Assembly (NCBI RefSeq): GCF_023055435.1
Contig: NW_025964361.1
Coordinates: 31,062,001 to 31,126,000 of the forward strand
Source: Haliotis rufescens
Lineage: Eukaryota
Direction: 5' to 3'
DNA: 64,000 nucleotides
The notes beneath the pieces were generated by a model, which was not told the origin of the DNA, ran no database searches, and saw only the letters and a list, made by a program, of their open reading frames with translations. Made by a program: the position numbers and the translations under genes. Position 1 is the stretch's first letter, and each line of letters opens with the position of its first letter. Below, piece after piece: positions 3,126 through 46,500 of the stretch.

Positions 3126-3126
3126 T

Positions 3127-3157
<31 letters not shown>

Positions 3158-16242: not shown

Positions 16243-19200
16243 ATGCTGAAGATGAAGATGCAAACGTGTCTTGTAGTCTTGTGGAGCATTCTCCTCTTTG
16301 TTCGGGAATCAGGTAGGTGATGTCAACACTTCTCTTGGCACAGCATGTCTGGTATTTGTTTTTCATGTGTATTTTTCGGTGTGATTTTCTCAGGAGAGGG
16401 AGCCTGAGAGTTTATATTCTCAACAAAAACCGAGAAGAATTGTTTTCTCTGGTTTATAAACTGTCACAAAGACATTTAAAGCGTTATATTATCATTTTCT
16501 GGACAAAAATATAACTCCAATCTTTAACCCTTTTAGACGAGCATATTGAAATATATATCACACTATCTACACTCAATTTCTTGATAAACAAAGATGCAAA
16601 TATATCCATCCTAGGAAACATCATATTGCAACCGCAAATAGATTTTGAAGAGACTGTCCTAGGATGTGATGTTTCAATTCACGAATGTTTTCATCAAGAC
16701 ATCTGCATTCCGGACAATATCAAGACCTATTAATGTCCAAAATAATTTTTTTTAAATTTTTCATATCTGAACTCTCTGGACAGATTGACAATATCGCCCT
16801 GATAGGATTCCTGGCTTGTCAGCATCATAACGGTGCTCGTTGGCTTCAACAACTGGTAGACGTCTACAGTTTGGGTTTTCCTTCCTCATTAACACACCGT
16901 GACATGAGTTAAATACTGCTCAAAATTGTTGAGCCAAACTCACTCACTAATTCATTTTTACTAGTATTTCGAAGCAGCCATGTAACTTGCACATTCCTGG
17001 AAATTGACATAGGTGATGCCTCTTTTTACAGATTGTCAGTGTGACTTCCCTATACAAGGTAACTGGTACATGTCCAGAAGTAACGAGAAGCTGAGTTTTC
17101 AAGGCTCAAGTGTCCTAGGTTTTACTTTTGAAGGAGGTCCTCTACTTCAGATCGACCTGACAACAACTTACAACTGCATTGCTACCGACGGCAGCAGATA
17201 TGTTATACAGTAAGCACTACTTTCTTGCTGCATCCTGTTGTTGATATCTATGTTTTGTTTGTTTGTTGTTTAACGCTGCACACAGCAATATTCCAGCTAT
17301 ATGACGGCGGTCTGTAAATAATCGAGTCTGGGCCAGACAATCCAGTGATTGACATCATGAGCATCGATCCACGCAATTGGGATACGATGACATGTATCAA
17401 CCATGTCAGCGATCCTGACCACACGACCCCGTTAGTCGCCGCTTACGACAAGCATAGTCGCCTTTTACGGCAAGCATGGGTTGCTGAAGACCAATTCTAT
17501 CCCGGATATTCACGGGTCTGTTGTTGATATCTAATTTACTCCTATGCAGATGGCGACGTTGGCTGCTACACTACAGTCACATCCCCAGTCTAGGGATCTT
17601 GTGGAATAAAAAAATGCTTGCTATTATATCGCATTGATTGTTATCAACGTTTAAGGCGCCGCAATTCGCTTTGAAGAGTTGCGTCCCTTGGGAAGCCTGA
17701 AATCAGAAGCCTATGATTATTGGTTTGAATTCCAGTTCGCGGCTATTATGTTTCTAGATTTGTCAGCACGATACACGTGTTTGGGTTTTTGAGACCTGCA
17801 TCACTGCGGGCATTCCTCCCACATTAAGCTGACTCGCCATGATATGCCTGGAATACTGTTCTAAGATGCGTTAAACCAAACTCCTTCACTCACTTACTCT
17901 TGTCACCAACCACTAGACAGGACTTAACGTAAGGTGTGACAAAGCTATGACACTGCTGGCAGTGGTATAAAACCTGATTTCCTAACTCACTTCGCGCATA
18001 TGCTACTTCTTCGTCATCACATCAGCAAACAATTGGTAAAAGATAATGGCCATCCAAGCAAGCACCATCACGTATGTCTTACCATGTTTAAAGTAATGAA
18101 ATCCAGTCAGTATGAGCGGTTGGTATCTCTGACAGGAGCAGCCAAGGCGTGGCAGAGGCTGGCGGCCTTCAACACGCCTTCACCTGCCTTCACTTCATTT
18201 CCGGGGAAACAACTGGAAATATCGCCACATTCGTTCAAGCCACAATCACAGGTAATACTCATGACATCTGTTCAAAGTCTGACATGTTTGCATGCACAGG
18301 TAATCTGAAATGAAATACGTATCTATTAACCATGAGCACTATAATCAATACACTGTAGATATCGCTTGATCTCACCCAAGCGATATCGACGTTTTGGATG
18401 ATAAACAACAAACAAATATGAACTATTCAATGATTTCTTCAAGGCCCGGCGACAGCTCCATTCCTTGTGAAGTACATCACTGCGGCCGCTTTAAGTGCTG
18501 ATTACCTCACCAACGTGTGTGACCTCGCCACGCCCTACCCTGAACACAGATACCACGTCTTCGTCAGAGAAGGTAGCTGTCGATCATTCCCATTGTTTAA
18601 AACGTGTCATGGATATTTACATGATGAATCTGAAGCATGGGTACTTCAAGGAGGATTTTGCTCTGAGGTCTGGTGTCCATTTTTGCCTTGTTCTAGAGTT
18701 TGTAATTAATACCTGGATGGAATCAAGACATTGTGTCGGTCTAATTTCGGTTACTATTCATCGTTAAACTGATACCCTTCATAGGTGTTAAACCAGCAGG
18801 CACACACGGTCATGTTTTAGGACTTGATTCACATTTCCGAGGACTACAAATTTGCCGGAACCTCCTTCCTTTTAACAGATAACCCGTTAGACAGACAAGT
18901 ATTCAGAAGGATAAACTCTGTATGGAAAGAAGTATTGGACTTCATCGAAGCTATACATAAAATTTGTACTTTAGATACTTGAAAATATTTCTCAATTTCT
19001 AAAAGTGATTTTAATTAGCAATACAAAAAACGCCAACGCCAGAGAATAATAAGTCTCAATTAGCCAAAGAAACAGATTCCATTGGTATTGAAAGGAAAAA
19101 TAGCGGTTACAATTACAGTAAACTACGGTTATAACGAACTCAAAGGGACCCCTTATCTTAGTTCGTAATAACCGTAGTTCGTTATAAGCGTATATACAAC

Positions 19201-22200
19201 AAATGGGCGGGACCAGAATATACAGTTCGTTATATCCGTCAGTTCGTTATAAGCATACTGTATAAGCATAAGTTTACTGTATGTGAATCGAAACTCAACG
19301 GTACGTGGATTGATCCTTTTCGCATTTCCTCCAATAGAAACGTTGTAAGAAAAACAAAATAACACCTTAATATTTCAGTGTTGGTACAATGTAAGGTTTA
19401 ACAGTAGAGTGCCTCACATTTTCAGTATCTGTACAAGGTCAGGTACTATATAGTTTTCATTTAACGATGGAACACAAACACGCTGCGCTCGTTAACTTGA
19501 TTCCCATCTACAGCTGTTCTCGGCAGCGTGGGCGTGGCCTGCCCGGGGGAGCTACAGGGTCTCCTGACGGTCACAAGCCCGCCCACTGCATGTCCAGCGT
19601 CACTGACCGGCTGCAGTAGCTCCACGTCTTTGCAGAAGGGCGACAGCACCACATGCAGCTGCACCGGTTGCTCCGCACCGTTATACTATGGTAGGTATAG
19701 ATATATTGTTGTTGAGATACTAGTATATCATAAAAACCTTTGACTGTAAAGGACAGAAATATTGGAAAGTGGACGCCATGGCCAAACGGAAATAGAAAAT
19801 AAAGTGGCTCCACCACTGAAAACATTGCTCACATAATAAACTATCATTGTGCCAAGGCATAATCTTAAGCTACATGTATATTGCATATATCTACTGGACT
19901 TAATTAGGTGTACTTGATTGGTTCTACTTTTCGAGACACTTTCCGCCATTTTGGTGCGCGTTATTTGTCCACGTGAAGTTAACAGTGTTAAAGTGATTTA
20001 GCTGGCAGTTTGTTTGTTAAATCAATACATTAGAGGATTGCTTCATGCGAATTAGATTAACGTTTCATTTTTGTCCCAGCAACAAACCCGGTGAGATGTT
20101 TGATGAACAGAACAGACACAACCAACAGCAGATCCTACGTCACGCTCATCAACCCGGAATTAACACAGCGCTTTATTTGTATTGTAAGTGCCACGTTATA
20201 CCAAACCTTTGTGCACATCACTTAAAATTGAAATAGATATAGCAAACCGCTTCATTCACATTGCACATTACGTAATCACTAAACCATACTTGAGAATGAA
20301 TGACGATTCGCTGATGTAATAAATTCAAATCTAAGACCCCGCTGAAGGGGAAACGGTGGAACATTCGTCTAGGGTGCCACTGCTGGGTTGCATCTCTTAT
20401 GACAGACAGAAACCTGTGACCGAGGGTTCGAATCCCGGTTTTCCCTATTTATGATTATTTTAACATCTCAGATTAGCGTCATCTCGGGCGTTTTCCAACA
20501 TCAAGCTCACCGGCTTGAAACGGCTTTAAACAAAACTCACTCACTCACTCCCTCCGCGGTAGTGACAATATAATGTTGAATGAGGACGAATTTGAGAATT
20601 AATACATCCGATTCGTATTTTATTTCTATTTCTTTGTGAGGACGTGTATAGTAGATCGCGTGTGTCTGCTATTTTACTCAAGTGTATAAATGAGGTTGTG
20701 CTAACGATAGATAGAACTGAAGACTAAATATTGACAGTAGCGGGTGACCTCGCCAAGATGACCACAACCAAGCTGTCTTCCCGATGAACGTCAGTATGTC
20801 GCGTGATGTTTTTACGTTGACGATCGAGCGAGATATACAGAACTTCTTTAGAGGAATTCCTCAGTGTCGACAAATAACGTCAAATAGGGACGGTATCACC
20901 ATACGATTCAGGCTATGAATGATATGTCTGATCACCGACTTCAGCCACAACTGATCATGATACTGCTCTACCTGCCAAAAGAAATCCCTTAGCTCCACAC
21001 CGTCTTGTAGGCCAACATGCATCGGGAATCCAAACCGCACCGCCTCAAGCTGTACTCCCCGTCTTCAGCAGCTCATCTAGCCTTAGTATGACTCAAACAC
21101 GCACCCAAAGTATACAAAACGTTTTATTAATACATTTTCAGAATCAATCCGGTCTGGAATTCTTTCCAATTCTAGCTTTTCTGGGTGCAACTTCTATTTC
21201 AAATGAATGACATTGACGTAGCAGCCATTTTATGGCTTTTTTAAAAACCAAGGGACGTAACTCCCATGGACTGTTTGGGGCGGATGACGACAAAAGCAAC
21301 TACTATAGTTCGATGTAAAACATTAAAGTTTGGTGTTTAAGTGGATTGTGTTGTTATGTTTTATATATCCGTTAATATAAGGATTAAACTTGTATTTGTT
21401 GACAACAAATACAACTTCAACCCATTAATGGAAATGGTATATGGGTTGGACACATGTAATATCGACATGCATACTTCAGGTTGTGAAGGAATCTACATCT
21501 GTGTCGACCGTCAGCTTCTCACAACGACCTCTGCAATGCGACGAGAGTCAATCCTCCACCACTGCAACAGGGGGTGAAGCTTTCACATTTGGAAAAGGTG
21601 AAGTATTTGTGTCATGACCTTGAATAACTAGTTTCACAAAGGATATATAACAACATGGTATTTTTTAAACATTATATATTTTTGATTTCACCACTTTATA
21701 TACATGGGGCTTGGTGGTATTAACATCTGCACTTCGACAGTGTTACGGACTATGACATGTAATAGATACGAGTACCCAGTCAAGTCTATTTTTATATATA
21801 ATTTCATTTTACATATAAATGTTATATTATCACCGTATTGTTTCCTTTTCAGAAACCTGTCGTAAGTAGACTCACGTCGATCATGACGACCAGGCTTGCA
21901 GTCTTGATGGTATCACTGCGCACCATAGATCAGGTGTTATCTCTGTGGCTTTTTTAGACGTAGATTTAACGTATATTTTAAGGGGAGGATTGGTAGAGAC
22001 GTTTTCATTCATTAAGCACCATATGTCTCAGGTGAGTGATATCTCCATGTGTTCTAAATCCATTTGTCTCAACTCAATATATTAAGAGTATAAGTGTTAA
22101 TGTTAAACGTACATATGTGATATGTGTTGGCTATTTTCTTCAGGGGGGCACGGGTGGCCCAGTCGTCTAAGGCGCCGCGATTCGCTGTGCAGAGTTGCGT

Positions 22201-25200
22201 CCCTTGGGCACGCCAGAAACCTATGATTGTGGGTTCGAATCCCGGTTCGCCCCGATTATGTTTCGTGGGTTTCACCGAAGTGGTAAACGTCTGAGACCTG
22301 CATCACTTCGGGCTTTCCTCCCACATTAAGCTGACACGCCGTGATATAACTGGAATAATGTTAAAAGCGGCGTTAAACGCAACTCACTCACGCACTCACT
22401 TTTTTCTTCAGTAATAATGTAGCACTGTTATAGCATATTGTGTTATGTTGCAGCTCCAGAGCCTAGTGATGGCACACTTAGTGCCACCGCTTTATCCATC
22501 ATCGGGGCTGTTGTGGCCATTATTATCATCATTATCATCATCACTGCCATCGTCATATTCATCATCTGCAAGAGGAGAAAGAAGAGGGAAGAAGAGAAAA
22601 AAAGATTGGAGAGACGAGCTATGAGGAGAGAAGAGAGAAGAAGACGGAGACTTGAGAGACAGGATAGAATACGAAGTATGTGTCTGGTACACGGTGTAGG
22701 TTCTCACCGAACCAACACAATGAGATGTTTACTCTGTCTAGAGTCCCAATACAAGGTCTATTGTGTCTATGTTCCCACATGACCAAAAACGTATATGTCG
22801 TCACACTCTAGATTCTGATCTCCTATGAAATTCCGTGTTAGAATTGATCTTCAGCAACCCATGCTTACCGTAAAAGGCGACTATGCTTGTCGTAAAAGGC
22901 GACTAAGGGGATCGGGTGGTCAGGCTCGCTGACTTGGTTGATAAATGTCATCGTATCCAAATTGCGTAGATAGATGCTTATGATGTCAATCACTTTATTG
23001 TGATCGGATCATTTACATACCGACGTCATATAGACAGAATATTGCTGAGTGCGGCGTTAAACAAACAAACAAACAAATAAACAAATCATCTAACCAGCAC
23101 AAGTACTTTATGTGCATACTGTGTCAATATTCTCACCTAAGGACTACAAATATTCCCTACTCTAGATTCTCACATATTCACAACAATTATCTGTCTACTC
23201 TGTCCAGATTCATAATTTTTTTATAATAATCTAAAGAGATAACAGTATTTTGTTCTGTTTCAAAGTATTGACTTGTAAATATATTGTAAAATGTACATTT
23301 GTTATAGGCTTATGAGTTTATGGTCTGATAATGTATGAAACTTCTTCGTTGAGTGACGACAAGCCTTCACTGATTGTATTGCCCGAGACACATGTGGTGT
23401 TACAGGAGGCCTCCCTGTCAGCGACCTGGACAGCGACTCGGACTCCTGCTACAGCACACAGTCCAACACCACCTTGGAGGAAACAGATGACAAGCCCATC
23501 TTCAAGAGGAAGAAAAGACCCTCCACACCCAAGAAATTAGGAAAGAAATTCAGGAAGATCTACGACGAAAAGGGCAACCTTATTCGAGAGGTACATCCCA
23601 ATTTAACACTGCCCACATGTTGAGTTTAATTTAAGCGCAGACGAAGAAGGGAGGGGGGTAGTGTCACAACTCGGCGTCGCGTCCAAGATTATTGCACTTA
23701 TATAGCGACGTGCATGCAGGTGTGTGTGTGGGGGGGGGGGGGGGGGGTCTGCTTGTCCTAGTCCGGACTGATGCCGATTTATAGTGCTAGCTCACTGAGA
23801 TACCATGCCGCAGTTTAACATGAATACCTCACTCAGACACAGTATACTGACTCCGAGCCGACCAGTCCTTGTTTTAGCCCCTTAATGCCGAGCGCCAGAC
23901 AGGGTAACAACAAGTAACATCTTTTAACGTCTTTTGGTATGACGCGGTCGGGGATCGAACCCCGGACCTTCCGCTCTCCCGGCGGACGCTCTACCACTAG
24001 ATCACGGAGGCGATCCTTCGTGGCATGAACAACATCATGGTGCGATGACATGCAATTAGGCAGCACCACTTGACAGGATCGCCATTTCTGTTCACTTTAG
24101 ACGCAACCATGTGGGACCTGATCTGCTCACACTGACAGGGAGAAACATTGGGTCGTCGGGCTTAGGGGTCGATCATTTGATATTCTAAGTGCGAGAGACT
24201 TGTAAACAATTTACCTCAGGTTTAATCCCAAAAGATAGTTGTTGACAATGCTGGTTCTCCTTAAAGAAATGAGTGCGTGAGTGAGTATGGTTTTACGCCG
24301 CTTTTAGCAATATTCTAGCAATATCACGGCGGGGGACACCAGAAATAGGCTTCACACATTGTACCCATGTCGGGAATCGAACCCGGGTCTTCGGTGTGAC
24401 GAGCGAACGCTTTAAACACTAGGCTACCCGACCGCCCCCTGAAAGAAATGTGTGAATAACCTATTGTACGGTTCCTTATGATCGGTTACATGATCAGTTC
24501 CTTTGAAGTGAAACGTCATCGTTTACAGCTGTACACATGTGGACGCAGGACATTGTGGTAAGGTGTGCTTTCATTGCATCTTTCAGGAAGAGATACCTCC
24601 GGACTCAGATGATTCTGGTGACGAAACGGTAAGAAAACCCAGGTATTTGTTTTGGGTGTTTAATGAGATGCGGTTGTGTGTTGACGCCGCACTCAGCCAT
24701 ATTCCAGCTATATGACGGCGGTCAGTAAATAATCGAGTCCGGACCAGATAGGTTAGTGATTGACATCATGAGCGGCCATCTATGTAAATGAGATACGATG
24801 ACATGCATAAACCATATCAGCAAGCCTGACCAACCGGACAAGGTTGTCGCCTCTTATGACAAGCATGGCTTGCTGAAAACCACTTGTAACTCGGATCTTC
24901 ACCGGTCGTGTTGAATTTTGTCTCTGTTTGACAAAATGAGATGAACAGTTATATTTGCTACACCTTTAAATAGAAAGAAAGTTTTCTCGTCCACAGTTGA
25001 CGTTCTATATACATGCCTTTTCCAGATTTACACAGTAACTGAGGACGGCCGACAGGTGAAGAAGAGACGAGCGAAGAAGACGAGGAAGTACATCAAGGAG
25101 AGGAAACTTCCAAATGGAAAGAAGGTACACCACCACTACAATAGGGGATGAAAATATTAATAAAAGTTATACTTTTATAAAGCTTTGCAGACCTATAAGT

Positions 25201-28200
25201 GGTTATATTTGCATGTTTATTATATATGTGTAATTATAATATTATTTTCATGTTAATTCTATTTGTATGCCTCTCTATGGCCAGGTGAAGGAGTTGGTTG
25301 AGAGTGACTATTGGTCCACATGCTCTGAGGAGAGCATTGAATCATGGGAGGTCGATCCGGTCAGAGCAGAGATTCATCTCGCGAGGCTTCGTCGGAAGAA
25401 GGAGAGGGATGACATGATGGTCGGTATAACTATCGTTCTCGGAGAGTGAATAAGGATAAGTTTTATTCCATACTTGAAGGCCCCAGGCCCATAGTTTATT
25501 CCATACTGAAAGGCCTCGGGCCCATAGTACAATTATGTTTTCGTGAGTGGTTACAGATCCGTTTAAGTTGTAGGAAAGACCGAGGTGATTTAGGTCTTGA
25601 ACGTTTACCACTTTGAAACCACGAACGCAGCTATGTTGCTGACTAACCTGGACATATAATCAGGGCGAATCTGGAATTCAAACCCCCGACGAAAGGTTTC
25701 TGAGACGCCAGGAATTGCTAATTACAGCTCCTTAGACGACTGAGACCCGCAATAAGTTTTTATCCTTTGACCAAAAGTCGCTGTTCAACTATATGTATCG
25801 CTCTGCTGACTGTCGCTGCAGCTTGAACTGGCACAACCCCGCCAAGGCCCTATGGTCACCAGACTCATGTATGAAAAGAAGACGGGGAGAGATGAACATC
25901 GGGGCAGCAAGAAACCTGGCAACTTCAAGAGACTGGCCCGACGCAAGCAGAAGAAGGTGCAGGAGCCTAGGGAAGAGGAGGAGGAGGAGGAGGAGGGTAA
26001 CGATGTGGACGGCCCGGAGAGGGATCAGTACATGGCGCAGTACATGAAGAAGAAGCGGCTAGATGGCGTGCTAGAGGACGAGGGATTCTGGGACGAGGAG
26101 AGGGCGAAACAGACAGCCAGAGAAATATTTGTAAGTTTGTTGTTGTTAGTATAATGTTGTGTGTCTTGTAACAATATTTTTTGTGCCTTTATGAACGCCG
26201 TGCATAGCAATATTTCAGTATATCCAGTATAATATTGTAATTCAGTACTATAGCCAATACATGATCGTATATGGTTCAAGCAAGCAAGGGAATCATGTTA
26301 TGAGCTATGATTCATGCCACTGGGGTACGATGACACGCCAGGTCGCCGAGCCTCACCCCCTGTCCATTTTATAAGTCTCCTCTGAGACCATAGTTTGCTG
26401 AAGAGCTATTATAAATCGTAATCCACACGGGAGAAGAATTCTAAGTGATCAAGAGATATACATTTATATGCTTATTGTGATTACTTGATGTCTACAGACA
26501 GTTGATTGTATTCATATATAATATATACATTCCCAAATTACAATGTTTGAATGATGACCTCTCCGTGTCTCTTTAAAGGAATTCGAACGACTTGATGCCG
26601 AAATAGAAGGCAAAACAGCATACCCGGACATTGAGTTTGTTAGTGAGACTCCCGGCGATGAACAGGTATGTCGACATGTACACACAAACGCATGTACGTT
26701 TTGTAAATTAATCGATAAAATCTTCATCCTGTGGTGAAAATTGTATGAATGGAACACTGATGTTCAGTGATGGCCCAAGCATTCTCACAAAAGGGTAAAC
26801 ATGCAGTTTACAACTAAGCATTTAGCGCATATGCCTAAAACAGGGGAATGTTTAACATGTATTCTTGCGATAGTTTCACACATCGATAACACCGTTAACA
26901 TGTTCTGTGTGTCAACACTATCCACTTGTTACAGCAGTCGTCAGCTATGGAAACATCAACCCAGGAAGTGACTGTTGAAGATGAAACAGAGAAAAAGAAT
27001 TCCATCAACCGGCTCAAAGACAAGGTCCGGCAGAAGGTACATGTTATGAATGTGATATGTAGCTCATAAAAGTAATACCATTGTACAGGGAGGTTACAGT
27101 ACTATAAAATGACCTGGAATAGTCATGTCTATTAAGGATTATTCATACACTGTGTCTTTGTTTATCATTAGGGCAAGGATGAAGCATCGGTGAAGTTTAA
27201 GGACGACGGGATATCTAAGTCAGAGTACGACGACCAGCACGATGATGACAAGGTAATGTACATGTACAAATGTACTAAGTCCTCAAATAATCATGGACGG
27301 CCTCCTTGGTCAGGTGGTAGAGCGTCCGCCCTCAGAGCGGAAGGTCCGGCGTTCGATCCCCGGCCGAGTCATACCAAGAGACGTTAAAGATGGTACTTGT
27401 TGTTACCCTGTAAGGGACTAAAACAAGGACTGGTCGGCTCGGAGTCAGTATACTGTGTCTGGGTGGGGTATTCATGTTAAACTTCTGCATGGTAACTCAG
27501 TGTGCTGGCTCTATAACTCTGCATCAGTCCGGACTAGTACAAGCAGCCGCTCACGCACACACGTGCATGCACGTCGCTATTTAAGTGCCATAATCTTGGA
27601 CGCGACGTTAAACCCCATTTCACCTCACCTCTACTCGATGCTGTTATATATTGTGATCCACTCATATAATTTTCACACATTTTCTCATATGAAATATGCT
27701 TCCATTTCAATAGTTATGCTTTTGCCCTCTTGTGAGAAACTGTTTCCAGTTGTTTTTTGCGTTTCTAGTATTCACCCTTGCATATCTGTTCCTACCTGTA
27801 TATCCTTTTTTCCCGTTTTATCCAGACCAGGAAGCAGGTTACAGCCCGGGTGAGTCAACTCCTCACTCAGAGGCTGCTCGGGGAGGATCATACACAAGAC
27901 AAGAAATCAGCCCTGAAACTGAGCGAGTCTAGAAAGGTAATACCCACATTCTACAAACACTTTACAGAGAGCGTCATACGACTCTTGCTCAAAAGTTGTT
28001 TGATCCGGGCTACAACATTCAAATGGGAATCATTGATTTCATTATTGTGACTTGCACCACATGTTACCCGTCTTTTAGGTGAACAATTGACTTGCCTTTG
28101 CATGTGTTTGTGACGAGTGACCTTTACGGCATGAGGGGATGGTGAACATGTGCAAATGCATGTGTTGTATATGCCTGTTATTAGTGTGTTATAAGAATAA

Positions 28201-31200
28201 GTAGGTAAATCAATGGTCATATAATGTTAGGTATGCTGACGAGGCTTACGTTATCATATGATTGACCACGGGTAAAATGCTTAAGCAAAATTCTATTGAT
28301 TCAGTAAATTGTTTTTTGGAAGTTTCACGGCACAAGGATTACATTGGAACCATGTACATTTAAATTATGTCCGTATGTTGTATATCGGAGGTTGAATCAA
28401 CGCAGTTTACATCTGTCGTCTGGAGAGTGCTGGAACTGAGTGGTTTCTTTGTCGTGATTTCTTGCAGAAGGGTCGGGTCATTTTTGTTGAGGAAATGAAA
28501 CAAAGGCAAGCCCCGGGAACTCAACCAAACAGACCGGGAGCATTAGCACCAATCAAGAAGGTTGTAGGTAAAGGGTCACTTCCGGGTCAGAGACGACCAA
28601 TCACAATGGACCCCGAGCAAGCAGCGATTTACAGAGAAGGACTAGCTAAGGATAAACACATTGTGGATGCATTGACAGGTATGGTGCTTTGATTTGTCAG
28701 CGTTCCCTGACGTTATGTGAAATTCCTTAGTTACATTTAAAAGATGGATGGTGTAGACCAGTGTTAAAAACGTACCCTCAATACAACGACAATCTGGGTT
28801 AGATTTCCCCCATCGGTGTCATGGTGAAGCTGCTACAGTGTCTCCATGGCTGAAACACTGCTGACAGCCTGGAGTGGGGGCTTATTCGTTTAGCTCAGGT
28901 CATTTGGGAAACTGCAGAAAAATAGTAATCGCATGTTGTCTTGCTTATTTCAACCAAAAAACCTTTCTTCTTCTACATTGCAGCTGAAGATTCAAGGGAA
29001 CTAGAGAGTGACAATGAGGTAGGTCAGAAACATTTTCCAGATTTCATGAAAACAAAATTACTAATAATTATGTAGTTTTTTTATTTAAATTTGAGCATTT
29101 TAACTTTTGTGGGTCTATTTCTTTTCCCATAATTTGTGAGAATATTGTTGATGTGTGCTGGTATTTTTATCATGAAGTAATATCATAATGTTTATCACCT
29201 ATATTGCCTCGACAAATGTCTTCCCTTGTATATAGGCTGGTACTGTCAACAACGCGAATCCCTTTATAACCAGACATATTGAGCAATAATGAAAAGTTAG
29301 GGGCTCGACTTCATCAGCGAGTTTTTGTTCATAAGTGACCTGAGTATTGATTGTTTTATATCATATTATACATCGATTTGACCGAACTTTATTTCTGGTA
29401 TGACATGATAAACTTAAAAAATGCGATCTTTCTCGGTTCCCATTTGTTAAAAGTCAGATGATGGACACATCGGGTCGGTGTTCAACAGCAATCTGCGCCA
29501 ATGAACAATCATCAATATTACACACGTTTGGAAACAGCAGTATTAAATGCAGACAGCAACAGAATTATTGACCAAAAGAGGCTCTGACATTTTATTCTAC
29601 ATTTTCCAATTCGCCTAGGATGGAGATAGTGACCTTGACGAAGGTCATTCCCGATTATCACCACTGAATCGTAGGAAAGGCCGTGGTCAACAGATTGGTC
29701 ATTTTCCAAGAGTCCAGGGTATTTATCAACTTAACAGAGCCGCATACAGAGGTGTTGAAAATGTTTGGCGAAATACGATGTAGGATGTTTTTAATTTTCA
29801 CCATGTATGATAAGATATGCAAGTGTTGTGTAACTAGAAAAGCATTGTCTCTGCTTATAAGAGCGTTATTTAGTTACGTGGATAACAGTACCAAACGTAC
29901 AATTAACAAAGCAATGATTGTCATGCCATTGCTTGGTTTTGAAAATAAATTACACTTATAATTGAGTATCAAGGCTTTAGAAATACTTTAGATATGTTGT
30001 GCTTGCAAATGTTCGTGTTTATTTCCACAGGCCACGCCCGCGAAGCCTGGGGTCATGGTGGCTCGGTATGTCGTTTACGTTCATATTGTATGATAAACAA
30101 AGCACCATGGATAGAGATATACACGCTCAGAAACAACAATGATTATGTCTTCTTCGACTGCCTATTTATCAGTTAAATGACAATTTGTGTCCTTTTTTGG
30201 CCCTCTGAAAATGTTTAATTTTGAATCTGCGGGAAACCTATTGGTACGAAACGTATCAGACATGTTCGAAAGGCTGACGGCTGGTATTTCTTTTTCTTTC
30301 TTACACGTGCAAGTTTTGGACTTATGGAATAAAACGTTACATAAATACAATTAAAATGGGTGAACATTTTTCGAAAATATTTTTTAAAATAATACTTGCT
30401 CCTCAAGTTCAAGTACCAGAAGAAATATTCCTGAAAAACTCTTGAATATGATTGTTGGGCACATGTTATAATTAGTCTTAACTGATATTCTCCCAAAACA
30501 TGCACGTGTTTGAAGCCTAAATCTCATTCATATATGAATACAACTGATAACGTTCATAACACTTCCTAAGGTTTAAATTTCCATATTTCTTAAATATGCA
30601 GATCTAGTAGGCCAAAAAGGGTCCTTCTGATACCTTCACTTATGTTTTTTCACTGGGTCACCACATAATTGATACTAAAAAGACATGATGCACAGAAAAA
30701 CCGACGATTTTCGTAACGCAACTGTAACGGTAATATTTGCTGTATACCATGCTGCAGTCAGTATTCCTCGCCCTCATTACAGAGTACGACGGCTGATAAT
30801 AACGGCAAACCAACGGTACCGTACACAGTGTCCGCACCAAAGTTTCACTCTTACCTAAACTTCCTTCGTGGACACGGCTCCGCGGACCGACCAGGGCACC
30901 TGACCGACAGAGACGCCAGCTACTGTAGGGGCATACGGGCGCCCAAGGGGATGACAATGGACGACGCCAGACTACGCCGCCTGCTGGAGGAGCTGTACAG
31001 GGACAAGAAGTACATGGACACCATCATAGATGCAGAAGGTAACACCTTTAGGTTCCTTATCCAGTCGAGTTTTCACGCATTGCCCTTGAGTTCGTTTGCT
31101 TGTGTGTTGTTTAACGCCGTGTGTTGTTTGACGCCACCCCAGCAATAAATCAATCCACTGATTGACAGTATGAGCATCGATCTACACAAATGGGATACGA

Positions 31201-32290
31201 TGACACGCAGTGAACCTGACCACCCAATCCCGTTGGTCGCCTCTTACGACAAGCATAGGTTGCTGTAGACCCGGATCTTCACCGGGTAATTGTCATTGTA
31301 AATAACATTGTCAGTCTATAGCATTCCGGGAACTATTCCAAGCGTGTCGCCCTATGGGAGCCAGGTTAGAAAAGGTATTTTTCTGCTTATCGTAAGGTCC
31401 AACTAAATTGACTCGGGATGTCATACTTGGTGACTTGGTTGATTTCTGTCCTCGAACACAGACGGTGTCGCATGATTGTCAAATATGCACCATTGATTGG
31501 ACTGGCCAAAACTAAGATTTAAATCCGACTGTGAGATTGATGAAACTGCCTTTGTGAAGCCACATTTGGCAGTATATACGCTCGTTCCAATTAAGGTGAG
31601 GTGAGGTGAAATGGGGTTTAACGTCGCGTCCAAGATTATTGCACTTCTATAGCGACGTGCATGTACGTGTGTGTGTTTGTGTCGCTGCTTGTACTAGTCC
31701 GGACTGATGCAGATTTATAGTGCTAGCTCACTGAGATACCATGCCGCAGTTTAACATGAATATCCCACTCAGACACAGTATACTGACTCCGAGCCGACCA
31801 GTCCTTGTTTTAGCCCCTTAATGCCGAGCGCCAGACAGGGTAACAACAAGTACCATCTTTTAACGTCTTTTGGCTTGACGCGGCCGGGGATCGAACCCCG
31901 GACCTTCCGCTCTCCGGGCGGACGCTCTACCACAAGACCACGGAGGCGGTCCGTTCCAATTAAGTCTGAATCCAACATTTACAGGCCGCCGCGATATAAT
32001 TGGAATATTGCTCACTTCGGCATGAAACAACATTGCTGTTGATCTAAAATGAAATATATCAACATTCATTTTCAGAATCTAACGATGAAGAGAAAGTGAA
32101 GCATCTGGCCGCACAAGGGCGGGACTACCTGCTGCAGATGGCGCTGTTCTGGGAGGAAAAAGGTCCACTCCCTCCTCGCCCGTCCGTCACTTCTCTTGGG
32201 TTTAAACTCGAACGATCCAAATCGGCTTTCATTAAGGACGAAACGGAGACACAAAGACCTACAATTGCAAGGCATAAAACAGTATGCTGA
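16243..32290 (+). CDS. Gene B: type I single-pass membrane protein, 1016 aa; Cys-rich two-domain ectodomain plus ~680-aa charged cytoplasmic tail with an ODAD4/TTC25-like C-terminal motif
   Basis: join(16243-16312,17032-17209,18136-18251,18444-18572,19514-19690,20080-20183,21480-21597,21853-21861,22454-22675,23406-23590,24587-24628,25026-25124,25285-25419,25822-26130,26579-26665,26935-27036,27172-27252,27826-27936,28468-28678,28984-29018,30031-30065,30758-31038,32076-32290) = 3051 nt, all GT-AG, continuous frame. Signal MLKMKMQTCLVVLWSILLFVRES; TM IIGAVVAIIIIIIIITAIVIFIIC followed by KRRKKR; ends RHKTVC*; AATAAA at 32519. Confidence 0.88.
17251..17518 (-). mobile_element. SINE-like S4, full length
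   Basis: 15-bp TSD tgttgttgatatcta at 17236-17250 and 17519-17533; starts GACCCGTG, ends (AAAC)n. Confidence 0.92.
17650..17897 (+). mobile_element. SINE S3, degenerate
   Basis: taaggcgccgc...gagttgcgtcccttggg...ttcctcccacattaagctgac...gttaaac. Confidence 0.8.
19116..19279. mobile_element. MITE (Tc1/mariner-pogo type)
   Basis: TA|CAGTAAACT...AGTTTACTG|TA with internal gttcgttataa subrepeats. Confidence 0.8.
21853..21861 (+). CDS. 9-nt microexon of gene B (E-T-C)
   Basis: tttccttttcag|AAACCTGTC|gtaagt; phase 1-1. Confidence 0.85.
22144..22401 (+). mobile_element. SINE S3 with small internal deletion
   Basis: TSD ttttcttcag at 22134-22143 and 22402-22411; A-box tggcccagtcg, B-box gttcgaatcc. 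Confidence 0.9.
22822..23085 (+). mobile_element. SINE-like S4
   Basis: Double atgcttg(t/c)cgtaaaaggcgact unit, shared tail, (AAAC)n. Confidence 0.88.
23672..24014 (-). mobile_element. SINE S2
   Basis: Near-complete match to 53703-54059. Confidence 0.9.
24272..24439 (-). mobile_element. SINE S1, full length
   Basis: TSD aaagaaatg at 24263-24271 and 24442-24450. Confidence 0.9.
24672..24907 (-). mobile_element. SINE-like S4 (single-hairpin variant)
   Basis: Similarity to 17251-17518 but lacking one 22-nt unit. Confidence 0.85.
27296..27630 (+). mobile_element. SINE S2
   Basis: tRNA head, core gtcataccaagagacgttaaagatggtac, (CACCT)n tail. Confidence 0.9.
31095..31287 (-). mobile_element. 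SINE-like S4, degenerate
   Basis: gtcgcctcttacgacaagcat...ccggatcttcac. Confidence 0.8.
31596..31951 (-). mobile_element. SINE S2, full length, young
   Basis: Perfect 13-bp TSD cgttccaattaag at 31583-31595 and 31952-31964. Confidence 0.93.
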
Positions 32291-37056: not shown

Positions 37057-37576
37057 TTTCAAAACAAACACACACACATATAAATAATCAAATACATCAG
37101 TGGTAGCGTATTGCATATCGCAGTCAATAAACAGCTAACGAAAGTCTACTCTTTCCACATAAACACACACAAGGTATAATTACGGATCATAAACGATCGT
37201 TATTTGATACATATGAATTTGTACATTAATTCATCACATTTAATAATAAACAACGTTGTATCTACGCCATCAAATATATTTTGAAGGAATTAATATGCTA
37301 TTTGTGTGATCTTTACAACCATTATTGTTTAATATATATTTACATAATATCATAACGTTCAATAATAAACAAGATTGTATCTAAGCCATCAAATACAATT
37401 TGAAGAAGTGTTATCCCCATAACAATCCATTTCATATGAGTAATCCCACAACTATCCCACACATGTTGATATGCTCTAATACATGGTGACACAATACATG
37501 GTGACCTGAATCTGATGAAGTAACACATTGTTAGTCCACTAATTTCGTCCTGTCCAATGTCAAGCACAATGCCCTT

Positions 37577-40500
37577 CTACTCTGACTTCTTCTTGTCTTT
37601 CTTCTTCTTCTTTTTCTTCTTCTTCGACTTCTCTACGTTTTCCTCTTGTGGTGCTTTAGAAGTGTCTTCCGGGCTTGATTTGACTGAGCTGTCCGTGGTT
37701 CCTTGTTTCACTGCGCCAGCCTGTTCAGCTTTAACGAGACTTCCTGATGATGCCCCAGCAGGCGTAGTAACAGCAGCAGTAGTTACAGCTGTAGGTTCAG
37801 CTTTAGGAGCGGCGGTGGTAGCAGCTGTTGGTGCAGGTGTAGGGGGAGCAGTAGTAGTAGCAGCTGTGGGCGCAGGTGTAGGGGTAGCAGCTGTAGATGC
37901 AGGTGTAGTGGTAGCAGTAGTAGCAGGTGTAGACGCAGCTGTATTAGGAGCAGGAGTAGTAGCAGCAGCCGAGGGAGCGGTAGGAGGAGCAGTTGCAGCA
38001 GTTGTAGTAGTAGCGGAAGCCGATGGTGTACTTGAAGAAGCAGCTATCGGGGTGCTTGAGGCAGTAACTGGTGTCGTAGAAGCAGGTTTCGCTGTTGCTG
38101 CAGCTGTGGCAGTGGCAGTTGCAGCTGCGGCTGCTGGGATTGCATCAGGCGGTGGGCGTGATGTGGGTTCACTTGGTTTACTCTCAGGTTTAGGGTTATC
38201 CTGGACTTTACTGGGTGACTCCTTTGGCTTTTCTGGTGACTTGTCTGAACTTTTCTCTCCCTTCTTTGCCGCCGTGGATGTTTCGTTGACAGTTGTAACC
38301 ACTGCTGGTGCTACAATCGTGACATGTTTAACATGGCCATTGGTCGGTGTTTTACCGTTGGCAGTTGAGGTTTTGGAAGGATGTGTGGATTTCTTCCCAT
38401 CTGAAAAATAAATGTAAACTTTTGATTGTATCTGTACACAAGTTATGTAAATTTCATTTAGAACTTAAAATATGCAAGCGTTACACACGTCTCGCTCCTA
38501 AAACTGACAGTAGGGGTGTAACGAAAGCTCAAATTTAAACAACGACGCAGTGAGACTGTCCATGGTCCTATTACGTGAAGCAGATAAATCATGGGGACCG
38601 TCGTCGACGATCACGGTTTCGTTATATTTATCAAATTAAATCCTCAAATTACTTATAACCAACGTTGTATGCAATTCTTATTAAGATACATATTGATATC
38701 TATTCAAAACAATGGCAGCTGCATACAAAGCTACCTTCTTTAACTCTCTTACACGTTCCCTGAACCTAGACGCATTGGGTTTCACCTGATATGAAAAAAA
38801 TGATACTGTTCAGAAGGGCGTAAATCCCCATGCTGACACTCACTGACTCATTCACTGACTGACTCACTCACTCACTCACTCACAGGGAGCCACGAAATCA
38901 GCGCACCTGAGAGGTGAAGGTGAATATGATAGAGTATTAGTCCAATGCCCCCGATCGAATGCAACTGGAAGGGACATGGGTTGCGCGGTTGTCTAAGGCC
39001 TAGTTATTCGCTGTGCAGAGTCTATTGCGCGTGGAAGAACCCTATAACAGTGGGTTCAAATCCCAGATTCACCATGATGAGTGTTTCTAGGTTTGTCAGT
39101 ATCGTATCCGTGCTCGAGGGTTTCACCAAAGATACAAAACTTATAAATTCTGCATCATTTCGGCTGACACGTCGTGATGGAGTGAGTGAGTCGGGTTTAA
39201 CGCCGCTTTTAACAGTATTCCAGTTATATTACGGCGTGTCAGATTAATGTGGGAAGAGCCCAAAGTGATGCAGGTCTGAGACGTTTACGCCGTGATGTAT
39301 CTGAAGTACTATCATAAATGGCGTTAAACCAAATTTACGCACTTATCACTCAAACCAATTGTTTTTTAACTATATGTATATTACACTATCAATACGATAT
39401 TTATCAAGCAGAGAACATAACGGCCAGCATGCAGTTTAGAATTTGAAATGACATACCGTCTTGAACTGTATTCAATTTCTTGTTGCGCTTCTTCATTAAA
39501 AAGACAATGACAATAACAGCAATGGCTATCAGGATGAGGATACCAACAGCGGCTCCACCTGCGATGGCCCCGATGCCATCCTCCTCTTCATCTGAAGTTA
39601 TCGCTGGCAACAATCGATTGTGAAGAAGACATAAGTAAACAAGCTGACAAGGAATAGAATGACATCATCTTTGAAAGTGATCTTAACAACAAATGTCGTA
39701 CATATTAAAGTTTATATAATATATAATTCAACAATATTAGTACAAAGCAATAAATGTTAATGTTATGATAACCAACGCAGTTTAGGTTACATGCTGTTTT
39801 ATGTCCATGCATGCCTGAGTTAACTTAGATGTATTAAGTAGTACTTACGACACAGTTCTGAAATAGATAAGGAAATATTTGTTAATATGGATTCCACGAT
39901 CGATTTCTGAAACATGTTTATACACAACAGAATGTTTTCTATTTACAATCACAAAGCGTTGTAAAAAAATGCAGATGCATGGATACTTTCACTGTGGATA
40001 AATGATATCTGCACGATAATATGTGTTATGTTGTGTTCTAGTATCACCTTATACTCAAGTCACACTCAGGGATAGGTGAGCGTGGGGGGCACATACATGA
40101 CAATATTCTTTAATCTGTTAATTGTTATCAACATGTAATTAATATTACAATTTATCATCCGCACTCATCTATATGACGACGGTCTGCAAATAATGTCATT
40201 GACAACATGAGAAAAGATCCACACAAGCGGGATACGATCGCGATGACAATGTCGTTTGTTGTTTAACACCGGAGTCAGCAATATTCCAGCTATGTCACGG
40301 CGGCCTTCGAACCATATAGTGTAATCACAAGAGTAATTCCATCACTATCGAACGAACTGTGAATATGAGAGTCTTGACCAGTCACAAAGATGATTTGTAT
40401 TATGAGCATTACCCACGTCGTCTATGTACGATGACACGCAAGTCACCAAGACTGATCACCCGATCTACGTCGCCGTCTCCCACGGCAAGCAAAGGTTGCT

Positions 40501-43500
40501 GGGGATCTTTATTCGGCATCCCCACAGATACATTGTAAATATAAACAATGTACACGACAATTATTGTGTGAACTGGTATGAATACAATGTCTTGATTTGC
40601 ATAGACATATGCCCGTTCCTTACCCAATCAGAAGCTGGTATTTTAATGTTAAATATTCATTATAAATCAAACTTAAGAAACGTATAACATACCTAAAGGT
40701 ACCATTGAAAGCAAACCGCCTGGAGAGACACTTGATGCGACTTGATTAGCGAAACAGTCCTGAGGAGTGTACGAGGCTGACACCGTACCCCCGTTGTCTT
40801 CAAGTGCCTACATACAGAAAATAGTTATTGCTTCTTCATATGGTGAGTCTTGGTCTGTCGGCAACATATCCAGTTTATGGATTTCACTTAATTGGTAAAC
40901 GTTAACGACCTGTTTAACTGTGGACTTCCTCCCCCATCAGGCTGCCAAGCCGACATATGATGGAAATACTGTTGAAATGGCATCACAATTAACTCACCAG
41001 CTACAACGACCAACTCGCACAACAGATCACACCAGAAGACCTTCAATGAGTTGTCTTTCACACAACGATCACATACATTTCATGAGGTATAACATTTGTG
41101 TTAACAATATGGTGTGTTTCATCCCATACACAACACCAGTTGTAATTATCTTGGTCATCTTATCTTTGAAAATATATTTTCTTTAAATTCGGCAAAAATT
41201 TACAACATTAGTTTTCAAGTATGGTAAGGGGGTCATGTGGTTGCAAATTCATTTCTTACCCCAGTCTTCATTGAACCCAGCCACAAATTAGTTTTTACAA
41301 TCGGTTGCAGGAATGAGTGTTGGATAAATAGGCACAATCGAATCTAACTTTAGTTCTTTCAATTTTCAATTACACAAAATTCTTTCTTTTGACCCTCAGT
41401 TTATGTCAGATCCCACAAATACAACAATTACTGTGGAAGAATGGGTGTGTCACACGAGGTTCTACATACAAAACACACTGTCCTGATGGTGGTGGAGGAG
41501 AAGGTTCCTGTTCCGATCCAGGTCCACAGGTAGGTATTAGCTCCTCGTGTCACAGCGCCCATACACTCCAGGTTTCCGCTAGCTGAAGTAGTACAATGTA
41601 GCATGCTTCAGTTTGTGTTATGGGGGGTCCAGGGTTTCACACTATTTCTTTGAGTCCAAATCCGAAATATTACATTGTTAGCTAGCACTGTGCGGATATG
41701 TCACTCGTCAAACTGAAAAGCACTATTCTAAATGCTCGTATCATCCAAACATGAAATCCTAAGGGGAACGTTCCGCCTCGGCATGTTGCATGCGGTTACA
41801 GAAGGGACATTTAGCTGCCTCACATAATATGGACCAGGGTCTTGGACACGTACGTATACGCTTTCGTTCATGTATCGACGAATATTTAATGTGTAATTCC
41901 ACATAGGTTAAACTCTGCATGTAGTTTGCACAACATGGTTTGCGTTATTCATATGTCAGACTTGCTTGATATTTCGATTGTCCATGGGTCAGACTTACTT
42001 GACACATTGTTTGTCCATCCGTCATACTTTCTTGGCACTTCGTTTGTCCATCTCATACACTTACTTGACATTTTGTTCGCCCATCTGTCAGACTTACCTA
42101 ACAATTAGTTTGTCCATCTGTTAGACGTACCTAACATTTAGTTTTTCCTTCTATCACACTTATTTGACACATTGTTGACCCATCTGAAACACTTTCTTGA
42201 CACTTAGTAAAGCCATCTATCAGACTTACCTAACACTTAGTTTGTCCTTCTATTACACTTACTTGACACATTGTTGACCCATCTGTCAGACTTACCTAAC
42301 AGTTAGTTTGTCCATCTGTCAGATTTACCTAACATTAAGTTTGTCCATCTCTCAGACTTACTTGACACATTGTTGACCAATCTGTCAGACTTACCTAACA
42401 TTTAGTTTGTCCATCTGTCAGACCTACTTGACATTTAGTTTGTCCATCTGTCACACTTACTCGAGTATGCCACCTGATCCGCACATTGGACGTAGTCAAT
42501 GGCGATGTTAGTTCTCCCCGGACAGACAGCGAAACTAGAGTTGCCCGTACACTTCGTCCCATCGAAGGTGTAGTTGTAGTTGCCGTGGATGATACTGGGG
42601 CACGCCACGGCCATCTCCCCCGCGGTGTCGCCTTTGCCTGTCCAAGGATGTCAGATAAAAACTTTGATAATGGTATGTTGAGTTTAAATATATAATCATG
42701 ATGCTTGATAATGTAATCAAGTGCAGAGGTATAAGTCATTCCACTGATTGTAGACAGCGAAGCTGACGATAGTTTTCTTTTCTCTGAAATGATGAGTTAA
42801 ACATGTTTTGGGCTCACGTGTCATATTTTTTTCAGAACTTCCAGCATGCCCAGATATCGTTTTACTTCGCCACCTACACCTGGTGTCATAATTGATTTTC
42901 TGTGATCCATTGATATTATTTTGATCACTATTTTGTTTTCACTTCCAGCCTCTTTATGATGTTGTAAATGTGTGCCGAAAAAGGCAATTTTTCTTTGTCA
43001 AAGGTAAGATGTTTAGTAAGATACTCATCACCAATTGTGTGATGAATCTTTTAAATGTTTAAATGTTTTAAGTCAAATTATATTCTTTAAAAACGTCGTA
43101 TTCCTTGTGTGCTGACTAAGCGCCGCACAGTTCATTTTTGTAGATTTAATATCTCTAATTAAAGATAGTTTCAAATAATATTAAATCAAACAATTTAAGA
43201 TACAATCACCATAGAGGTAGCGTTTCTTTCGCTCCTCAGTTTATATTGGGGAAAAAATATATTTTTCTTCAGAATACCAAATGGTCAGCGACTTCTTCAT
43301 TATAAACTGCCAGGCACAAGAAAGTATACACTCATATTGCATGGTGGTTAAAATGACAAAATTGAAAAAAAATATTGGTTATTCGATGGTGATGTGTTTG
43401 ATGCAGGTATCACAGTTGTGTTTTGGATCTTACGTTTGCATTTTTTCGGTTACTCTTTTCAGCCAAGTGACGTTTTAATAATGATTGTAATTTTGGTCAA

Positions 43501-46500
43501 ATTCAATTTTCAAGTGTACACTTTCTTTTGTCCGGCGGTTTACATGACCTGACATCAGCCTTAACATATACAGGGCAATCTCTTGAAGTATATCATCATA
43601 TGTTTACAGTGTAAGTCAATATGCCTGTATGGGTGAATGTGTTACAGGTCATGATGCCATGATGGGATGTTGTCCTTCAAAGGGAGTAAAGGTGATACTG
43701 ACACAGCATAACGTCTATACAGAACAAAACCAGTTAACCAGCGATCTTGCTTGTGTCTACCCACCGCTTCTGTACATGATATTCGATCTGATCTCCGACG
43801 GTTGAAAGGCACACACGTCAAGTGATGTAAGCGTCGGGTTGATATCCACGAAGCCTTTCACAAGTGTCAGATCAACATCGCTTACCGAGATCTTTGAGCT
43901 GACATCTGCAAAGGAAATATCTAATGTCAACGAACAGGTTAATGTGTGGTGCAAATGAGAAGTACATCCAAGGAAAATAACACGTTTGTGAAACATCATC
44001 ACAATTTCCGCGCTAAAGAACCACAGGTACGAAACTCCACTTGTTATTTAAACAAAGCGACAAAGTCATTTCCATAATCGTAAGAAATCTCTGCTGAAAG
44101 CAGAGTCCATAGTACTATTCGCACTGTACCATGAGCATGAATACATTATGGATCACCATGAACTATTGATGATACCAGGTGTTCGCGAAAAGGCGATCCT
44201 GTCATTTTCCTTGGAAAACACGAATACATGCAAATGTCAGTCAATATTTTATTTGAAAAATAGTCAAAAGAGGTGATTACATTGTCTGTTTCCCTATGGA
44301 AAAGCATATACTTACTTGCTAGGTCTGTCATTAAGAAACTATTGGCGCCGAAGACTTCAATAGCGAGGCATAGATAGACGAACTGGTTATCCACGGTGTA
44401 GGCTCTCGGGAGATCCTGGCTAGACAGGGAGCATACATGCATCAGAAATAACCAACATAGTAGATGAACAACGTGTAGTATGTAGTAATTAAGACGACTG
44501 CGATACACAGAGGTTTGTTGGGAACTAGCAAACATACCAATAGGTTTCACTAATGTTACATATCAGTTTCTTAATCTCATTAAAACAACAGCATGTATTA
44601 TATAGATATCACACGTGTCTGTGAGGGCAACATGGAAATGGAAATCACACATGTCTATGAGGTCAACATGGAGATGTGAATCTCACGTGTCTATGAAGGC
44701 AATATGGAGATGTAAATCTCACGTGTCTATGAAGGCAACATGGAGATGGAAATCACACATGTCTGTGAGGTCATGATCAACATGGAGATGTAAATCGCAC
44801 GTATCTATGACGGCAAATTGGGGATGTAAATCACACGTGTCTATGAAGGTAACATGGAAATGTGCAAATCACACGTGTCTGTGAAGGCAACATGGAGATG
44901 TACGTAACACGTGTCTATGACGGCAACATGGACATGTACGCCCACGGTTCTGTTGATGGCAACATAGAGATATAAATCACATTTGTCTATGAAGGCAAAA
45001 TGGAGATATATATCACACGTGTCTATGAAGGAACATGGAGATGTAAATTACACGTGTCTATGAAGGCAACACGGAGATGTAAATCACACGTGTCTATGAA
45101 GCCAACAAGGAAATGGAAATCACATGTGTCTATGAAGGCAACATGGAGATGTAAATCACACGTGTCTATGAAAGCAATATGGAGATGTAAATCACACAAT
45201 TCTATGAAGGCAACATGGAGATGTAAATCACACGTGTCTATGAAAGCAATATGGAGATGTAAATCACACAATTCTATGAAGGCAACATGGAGATGTAAAT
45301 CACAAGTGTCTATGAAGGCAACAAGGAAATGTAAATCACACGTGTCTATGAAGGCAATATGGAGATGTAAATCGCACGTGTCTATGAAGGCAACATTGAG
45401 ATGGAAATCACACGTGTCTATGAGGTCATGATCAACATGGAGATGTAAATCACAAGTGTCTATGAAGGCAACAAGGAAATGTAAATCACACGTGTCTATG
45501 AAGGAAACATGGAGATGTAAATCACACGTCGTTATGAAGGCCACATTGAGATGCATCATTGAGAAAGTATGTTACTGCTATACAGACATACCAAGGTAAA
45601 ATTAAGTGGTCATACCAAACTGTAGGGACAAGATAGCTCCCAAAGGTAGAGAGATATGTAGTCTACCCAAGTCACATTGGGGCGACTCAATGAAGTAAAT
45701 AATAAACTGAAATGCTTGCAATACAGAGACGTTGCATGGGTACCTATGATGCATGTATTAAAACTATGTCTGAATAAGTAGGTGATATTGTCAGTACTTA
45801 CACAATAACATATGTGGCTCCATTTATCTCCTGGCATCTGAAATCATTGTAAAATTGTGTGCCGCTGTAATAGTTGAACCCTTGAAACGAACTGGACGAA
45901 ATTGTAAACGACTTGCCATCCCTTTCTCGTATCCAGGTGCCCCAGATGGAACTGGGGAAATTGCACTGGCTATCTGAAAAGTGTGAATAAAACTAATTAA
46001 CACACGGTATCTTTTGTCAGAGTCGAAAAGGCTCCATCCGATTTTGTTCTTGTGATAAACTGAAATCCTTTAAAAACACAGCATTTGTTTGTTTTTTAGT
46101 GTTGCCATGGAATGTTTATTATTGGTTCAGGAAATAAAGTGTTAAGGAGTATTGGACAATGTTCTAAACTTATATCTGTGAGTGTTACGAGTCTCAACAT
46201 CACAGCTGGAGCCAATGTATCTGGGTTTCTGTGTACCCAATCTNNNNNNNNNNNNNNNNNNNNNNNNNNNNNNNNNNNNNNNNNNNNNNNNNNNNNNNNN
46301 NNNNNNNNNNNNNNNNNNNNNNNNNNNNNNNNNNNNNNNNNNNNNNNNNNNNNNNNNNNNNNNNNNNNNNNNNNNNNNNNNNNNNNNNNNNNNNNNNNNN
46401 NNNNNNNNNNNNNNNNNNNNNNNNNNNNNNNNNNNNNNNNNNNNNNNNNNNNNNNNNNNNNNNNNNNNNNNNNNNNNNNNTGTGTATGTGTCCTCATACG

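Follow-up and report, generated by a model that had tools for sequence, protein, structure and literature searches.

The stretch of DNA analysed here, referred to as the window, comprises 64,000 nucleotides of the abalone Haliotis rufescens (RefSeq assembly GCF_023055435.1, contig NW_025964361.1, positions 31,062,001 to 31,126,000 of the forward strand). It contains a gene, henceforth gene B, whose predicted membrane protein ends in a two-exon helical module that is very probably related to a segment of ODAD4 (TTC25), a subunit of the complex that docks outer dynein arms. Gene B corresponds to LOC124148097 isoform X1, a protein of 1041 residues (P0001) annotated at source as "uncharacterized protein". 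Alignment of P0001 to the window by tblastn gave 14 exon matches at 95-100% identity, extending from 16243 to 32287. The coordinates of gene B, its paralogs and the ODAD4-like genes of the abalone are collected in Table 1.

Table 1 Features of gene B, its paralogs and the abalone ODAD4-like genes. Positions refer to the window unless a contig (C) or locus (L) handle is given.
Feature	Location	Strand	Description and basis
Gene B coding span	16243..32290	+	Signal-peptide exon through stop codon; tblastn of P0001
First coding exon, signal peptide	16243..16311	+	P0001 residues 1-23; hydrophobic; AlphaFold2 (AF2) helix 3-20
Transmembrane (TM) exon	22456..22674	+	P0001 residues 302-374; hydrophobic helix, then strongly basic stop-transfer stretch
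Penultimate coding exon	30783..31038	+	P0001 residues 886-970, 100% identity; phase-1 donor at 31039 (AAG/GTAAC)
Block 1 (helix 1), DD-x-RLRRLLEELY-x-DKKYMD...	30960..31038	+	Nearly invariant in 20 mollusc homologs
Phase-1 intron between blocks	31039..32075	+	GT 31039-40, AG 32074-75; interspersed repeat inside
Last coding exon	32076..32290	+	P0001 residues 971-1041, 100% identity; stop 32288-32290
Block 2 (helix 2) and proline linker, ...LA-x-x-GR-x-YLL-x5-FWEEKGPLPPRP	32096..32182	+	hhalign, hidden Markov model (HMM), AF2
Family-specific extension past linker, x-T-x-LG-x-x-x-x-R, short third helix	32183..32230	+	T1009 and G1012 nearly invariant
B' (LOC124148145) ectodomain exons, head-to-head with B	9023-8838, 7481-7353, 6118-6005, 3716-3600	-	tblastn of B-family ectodomains
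B' tail	C583:31040728-31041424	-	Exons ~21 kb before the window; TM likewise upstream of the window
C3, divergent family gene, 1.6 Mb away	L009:8156-8755, L013:6003-8096 (G000:C583:29445000-29463500)		DUF7042-like exons, TM exon, both blocks
ODAD4-1	L021, G000:C334:60793000-60802999		TTC25 E = 1.4e-11 (residues 214-286), E = 1.6e-4 (residues 180-206)
ODAD4-b	L010, C334:60820000-60829999		ODAD4 E = 5e-10 (residues 385-447)
ODAD4-a	L004/L014, L014 = C334:60830000-60839999		ODAD4 top match, E = 5.6e-4 (residues 286-350)

P0001 begins with an N-terminal signal sequence, followed by an ectodomain of ~300 residues that is beta-rich in the AF2 model, one TM helix (~309-340), a Lys/Arg-rich stretch and a charged cytoplasmic tail of ~700 residues, most of which is predicted to be disordered. 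Over the TM region the Kyte-Doolittle value was 3.81 at residue 320, and AF2 predicted a helix at residues 309-374 with a predicted local distance difference test score (pLDDT) of about 90. On the basis of hydropathy, AF2 and exon mapping, a type I single-pass membrane protein is a fair description of B, as had been proposed in an earlier, sequence-only reading of this DNA; with that predicted topology, the module of B faces the cytoplasm. The placement of ectodomain, TM helix and module in one transcript is indicated by the NCBI gene model and by the same architecture in independent predictions for at least seven other mollusc species.

The splice junction between the last two exons of B (GAA G/gtaac at 31038 and ...tttcag/AA TCT at 32076) reads IIDAE-E-SNDEE, and the same DAE-E-SND junction is present in P0001, the NCBI protein. 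The sequence-only reading had quoted this junction peptide and had placed the tail motif at 30950-32175; peptide, junction and motif were all found there, but the penultimate exon begins at 30783 and not near 30950. The interspersed repeat inside the last intron (31769-31978) can be read on the minus strand as ...VVERPPGERKVRGSIPGRV...LKQGLVGSESVYCV and recurs in loci L009, L010 and L023; no tRNA was found in it using ARAGORN. A run of N is present in the window near 46.2-46.5 kb.

The terminal module is by far the best-conserved portion of the family proteins in an alignment of 20 mollusc sequences. Block 1 shows no variation at LLEE, DK and D in that alignment, nor does block 2 at GR, L, A, W and P; in the extension, G-P-L, R-P, T and G are almost free of variation. 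Two AF2 runs both produced a helix, a short loop, a second helix, a proline linker and a short third helix (pLDDT 63-78), the helices of P0001 falling at residues 946-971 (block 1), 975-999 (block 2) and 1010-1025 (third). The models are consistent with an autonomous helical unit of ~75 residues, made up of helix 1, loop, helix 2, PLPPRPP linker and short helix 3. No Pfam family covered the module when B exons, ODAD4 exons and 24 family members were searched, and an ESM Atlas look-up gave no usable match for it. No counterpart of the extension at 32183..32230 was found in canonical ODAD4. An upstream tail exon of B (28465-28680) contains a motif, G-L-x-x-D-K-x-x-x-x-x-L, that loosely resembles block 1 and reads GL-x-x-D-x-x-x-L-x-x-L across the family; this exon was rejected as a repeat of the module on its block-1 HMM score of -3.5 bits.

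A six-frame search of the abalone genome with the last exon of B returned B, its paralog B' and two weak loci. One of these, L004 on contig C334, contains a block-1-like exon, a block-2-like exon and an exon encoding tetratricopeptide repeats (TPRs), in that order. Searches against PDB sequences identified three tandem ODAD4-like genes within ~45 kb of C334, a different contig from that of B (Table 1), and the block-2 exon of ODAD4-a matched ODAD4 and no other PDB entry. ODAD4-1 is the mammal-like ortholog and carries FWRQQKP-x-Y as in mammals. The downstream copies, ODAD4-a and ODAD4-b, are diverged and contain a proline-rich stretch past the Trp that is absent from ODAD4-1 and from mammalian ODAD4. 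Elsewhere on C334, a lone block-1-like exon, ELLGELFADKEYLEKLYD, was observed on the minus strand (L022 ~3090-3363; G000:C334:26139198-26139269), scoring 14.7 bits and followed by a phase-1 GT donor; it lies in a transposon-rich region with no block 2 within ~13 kb downstream.

The relationship between the module and ODAD4 was evaluated with block 1 and block 2 HMMs built from the 20 mollusc family members alone, with ODAD4 left out. All six-frame open reading frames (ORFs) of at least 20 residues in ~150 kb of abalone DNA (n = 5014) served as targets. ODAD4-a scored 13.2 bits with block 1 (P = 3.5e-6) and 29.7 bits with block 2 (P = 1.8e-11), the latter being the highest block-2 score of the three ODAD4 genes. 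The corresponding values were 16.0 bits (P = 4.6e-7) and 20.4 bits (P = 1.4e-8) for ODAD4-b, 16.0 bits (P = 4.7e-7) and 13.6 bits (P = 1.9e-6) for ODAD4-1, and 11.7 bits (P = 1e-5) and 24.2 bits (P = 9.5e-10) for the family gene C3. The best background ORF reached 7.8 bits (P = 1.6e-4) for block 1 and 9.5 bits (P = 3.5e-5) for block 2. Block 2 of ODAD4-a alone corresponds to a genome-wide E of ~8e-4 (~4.5e7 six-frame ORFs, 1.33-Gb genome); since a block-1 match lies in the adjoining upstream exon, the E value for ODAD4-a is lower by several more orders of magnitude. The family alignment was also compared by hhalign, profile to profile, with ODAD4 exon alignments of two rows; block 1 matched at P = 7.2e-5 and block 2 at P = 2e-6 (probability 89%), both at the expected columns. 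When a five-row block-2 profile was searched against the whole genome, the only clear matches were the five block-2 loci.

The blocks are collinear and lie on adjoining exons both in the B family and in the abalone ODAD4 genes. Introns were compared exon by exon across the abalone genes B, B', C3 and the three ODAD4 genes, with splice sites read directly; the spliced sequences used were database proteins only. In B, B', ODAD4-1, ODAD4-a and ODAD4-b the intron between the blocks is in phase 1, with G as the first codon base, and lies 8 residues past the Tyr of DK/R-x-Y. The intron of C3 lies 5 residues past that Tyr. The distance from intron to the Gly of G-x-D/N-Y/F-L is 13-16 residues in these genes. 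The common ancestry of the two-exon unit in the B family and ODAD4 is well supported by these comparisons and is regarded here as close to certain. Helix 1 and helix 2 of the module share ancestry with the ODAD4/TTC25 segment between the N- and C-terminal TPR arrays (human ~180-245).

The sequence-only reading had suggested this homology from ODAD4 strings that it quoted, and these strings proved correct when compared with PDB sequences (human ODAD4, 8j07_m9, 180-206; bovine TTC25, 214-258). Its proposal of homology with the inter-TPR segment is borne out by the two collinear blocks and by the matching phase-1 intron in B, B' and the three abalone ODAD4 genes. The profile match to ODAD4 that it called for was obtained by HMM and hhalign through the abalone ODAD4 genes and was not obtained directly against mammalian ODAD4 in the PDB. 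It had also stated that B lacks TPRs and is not the ODAD4 gene, in agreement with the finding of no TPR Pfam match in P0001 or in any of the 24 family members.

The distribution of the family was determined by searching a profile of the B last exon and the paralog exon against 1.84 billion representative proteins at a cut-off of E <= 1e-3. P0001 was retrieved at 151.6 bits, and all 25 matches contained the terminal module. Every match with a named source was from a mollusc: Haliotis, Elysia, Plakobranchus, Aplysia, Lymnaea, Littorina, Babylonia, Gigantopelta, Mactra, Mya, Potamilus, Sinanodonta, Mizuhopecten, Pecten, Argopecten and Mytilus. All were annotated as uncharacterised, and in this search the family was detected solely in gastropods and bivalves. 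When the whole alignment served as query in a homolog search, low-complexity words dominated, and the two Haliotis proteins were all that came back. Hydropathy analysis predicted a TM helix in seven of the longer, predicted full-length members, and 6 of 24 members matched the DUF7042 ectodomain family (Pfam PF23069; best E = 6e-8). The P0001 ectodomain itself fell below threshold against PF23069 (E <= 0.01 was missed), and the DUF7042 region of bivalve members can be aligned with exons of B' and C3. No literature was found on DUF7042 or on six LOC identifiers. The view of the sequence-only reading that the fusion is undescribed was thus upheld, with no Pfam family, paper or annotation covering it and with all relatives labelled "uncharacterized".

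Three membrane genes of the abalone carry the module: B, B' and C3. The annotated LOC124148145 (B') model has 649 residues and a start Met immediately after a TM helix, with ectodomain-like exons further upstream in the window. The TM helix was observed at ~7589 of locus L012, on the minus strand, in the same open frame directly before the annotated start Met. The database model is probably truncated at its N-terminus, or an internal start is used. A Thr-rich juxtamembrane stretch was observed in C3. A further gene, gene C, occupies window positions ~37500-48000 on the minus strand and has ectodomain exons in common with B (45992-45709, 47921-47838 and 42608-42456). A separate TM helix is encoded near 39560 and an ORF rich in Ala, Thr and Pro lies at 37577-38302, but the gene has no ODAD4-like module. 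Since gene C combines the ectodomain and a TM helix without the module, ectodomain and tail are separable units.

The simplest reading of these comparisons is that the module came from an ODAD4-type gene, because the segment is present in ODAD4 from molluscs to mammals and the membrane family was found in molluscs alone. An ancestral mollusc DUF7042 membrane gene would have gained a partial ODAD4-type copy, consisting of block 1, intron and block 2, as its new 3' end. There are hints that the donor was a proline-rich paralog like ODAD4-a or ODAD4-b, given that the proline-rich stretch is common to these two genes and the family and that ODAD4-a is the top scorer. A maximum-likelihood tree of block 2 (47 columns) grouped 20 core family tails together (support 91/89) and placed C3 and the ODAD4s on long unresolved branches, so that no donor can be named from it. 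The upstream exon boundary is in phase 0 at 30783 in B, whereas the ODAD4-a exon begins within a codon; as these boundaries differ, the capture would not have been a simple swap of whole exons.

The reading preferred here, to which a probability of roughly 0.7 is assigned, sees the unit as a docking module derived from ODAD4 and carried by a membrane protein. The module is probably the protein-docking end of the cytoplasmic tail and would bind its partner by the helical hairpin and the proline motif. ODAD4 is one of the structural subunits of the docking complex, a pentamer located on protofilaments A07/A08, in which the TPRs of TTC25, together with ARMC4, bridge neighbouring CCDC114/151 coiled coils as a solenoid (PMC8595878). 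A partner in common with ODAD4, either the docking complex for outer dynein arms or the intraflagellar transport (IFT) machinery, would be the leading candidate.

Several results weigh against the docking-module reading or the homology on which it builds. Using phmmer, none of the B exons retrieved ODAD4 from the PDB sequences, even at E <= 10. Similarly, hmmsearch of the PDB with a full-length B-family profile gave low-complexity matches only, with no ODAD4 at E <= 10, and no ODAD4 was returned by the 1.84-billion-protein search. When ODAD4-only profiles were searched back on the genome, B' appeared only at E = 1.16 among proline-rich chance matches and B was not listed; because of this weak reverse search, the link between B and ODAD4 is asymmetric, with the molluscan ODAD4 genes as its basis. 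Foldseek comparison of the P0032 module model with the PDB gave generic helical hairpins only (E >= 0.55) and no ODAD4, a result considered uninformative for a two-helix unit. No role is stated for ODAD4 residues ~180-250 in PMC8595878 or PMC10139691. Lastly, several predicted homologs, namely those of heterobranch gastropods and the annotated B', lack a TM helix, and for this reason soluble isoforms or shortened gene models are possible.

The docking-module reading leaves room for different partners, and the three cases that follow are sub-cases of it that may overlap. The first, which is held only tentatively, is that the module was co-opted outside cilia, with the hairpin and PLPPRPP bringing signalling or cortical proteins to a membrane protein that resembles an adhesion molecule or receptor. 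PLPPRPP resembles an SH3/WW-type ligand by look, the proline motif and third helix are nearly invariant in the family, and the tail contains further conserved islands that have no ODAD4 counterpart. Canonical ODAD4, with FWRQQKP-x-Y at this place, has no proline motif. A proline-rich stretch past the Trp is nevertheless found in ODAD4-a and ODAD4-b as well, so the motif is not unique to the membrane family.

A second and more doubtful case, put forward in the sequence-only reading, is that proteins of the B family act as tethers between the axoneme and the membrane of cilia or flagella, whether in sperm, in gill or in larval cilia. The homology of the module to a segment of a docking-complex structural subunit would fit such a role, as would the predicted type I topology, which puts the module in the cytoplasm. 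Nothing, however, marks this ODAD4 segment as the contact with ODAD1/2/3 or tubulin, and the family was found in molluscs alone, whereas motile cilia are universal. A scan of the window showed no enrichment of X-box (RFX) sites: with one mismatch allowed, 15.4 were expected and 9 were present, none of them close to the first coding exon. It therefore gives no support for a cilia-type promoter.

The third case, considered improbable, is that the module acts as a ciliary-entry or IFT-coupling signal. In ODAD4 the segment would then serve to load the protein onto IFT trains, and B would be a cargo or adaptor of IFT instead of a static tether. PMC10139691, with reference to Wallmeier 2016 and Xu 2015, states that entry of TTC25 into cilia does not depend on the other subunits of the docking complex and that an interaction with IFT complexes has been reported; neither that article nor PMC8595878 maps the part of TTC25 that binds IFT.

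Outside the docking-module reading, a chance or convergent likeness of two amphipathic helices with no common ancestry is strongly disfavoured: the module is short, the structure search was unspecific and direct matches to mammalian ODAD4 are missing, yet two independent exon-level matches stand well over the background of ~5000 ORFs, in the right order and on adjoining exons, the intron agreeing in phase and position across five genes, and the genome gave no clear matches beyond the five block-2 loci.

ODAD4 is a primary ciliary dyskinesia gene, and its inter-TPR segment has so far had no domain definition. The arrangement in B is a new architecture, in which an undescribed segment of a known protein is carried by a family of membrane proteins. 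That the two-exon unit has been retained with hardly any change at the end of this mollusc family speaks for a functional module that is self-contained and not filler between TPRs, and with the homology solid the unit gives concrete access to a part of a disease gene that lacks annotation. If the partner of the module is axonemal or IFT-related, the family would represent a new kind of membrane-axoneme connector and would help to establish what that part of ODAD4 binds. Were the tether to prove true, it would provide a direct, genetically tractable link from the ciliary membrane to the 24-nm axonemal repeat, and the inter-TPR segment would be a portable docking domain. If the partner is unrelated to cilia, B would be a clean case of partial-gene capture giving a new tail to a lineage-specific receptor-like family.

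Three known systems invite comparison. With known linkers of membranes to the axoneme or to microtubules, the likeness would be an analogy of function only, drawn from general knowledge; the axoneme contact of B is hypothetical and no sequence relationship is claimed. The likeness to DUF7042 (PF23069) mollusc membrane proteins is closer, as scallop, mussel, clam and whelk relatives combine DUF7042 and a TM helix with a tail that is long and charged and ends in the module, and as B, B', C3 and gene C of the abalone have ectodomain exons in common with them. These relatives are annotated "uncharacterized" or "DUF7042 domain-containing" throughout, and B differs from them in that its own ectodomain lies under the Pfam threshold. 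With ODAD4/TTC25, B was not linked to the mammalian protein by direct sequence searches, and the two proteins differ in layout: B has no TPRs, and its module, which is attached to a signal peptide, ectodomain and TM helix, is C-terminal where that of ODAD4 is internal. B also has the nearly invariant PLPPRPP-x-T-x-LG extension and a third helix. In common, the two have the collinear blocks L-x-x-L-Y-x-D-K/R-x-Y-L and G-x-D/N-Y/F-L-x5-F/Y-W on adjoining exons, separated by a phase-1 intron 8 residues past the Tyr, in a segment predicted to be helical, and the abalone paralogs ODAD4-a and ODAD4-b resemble B further in the proline-rich stretch past the Trp.

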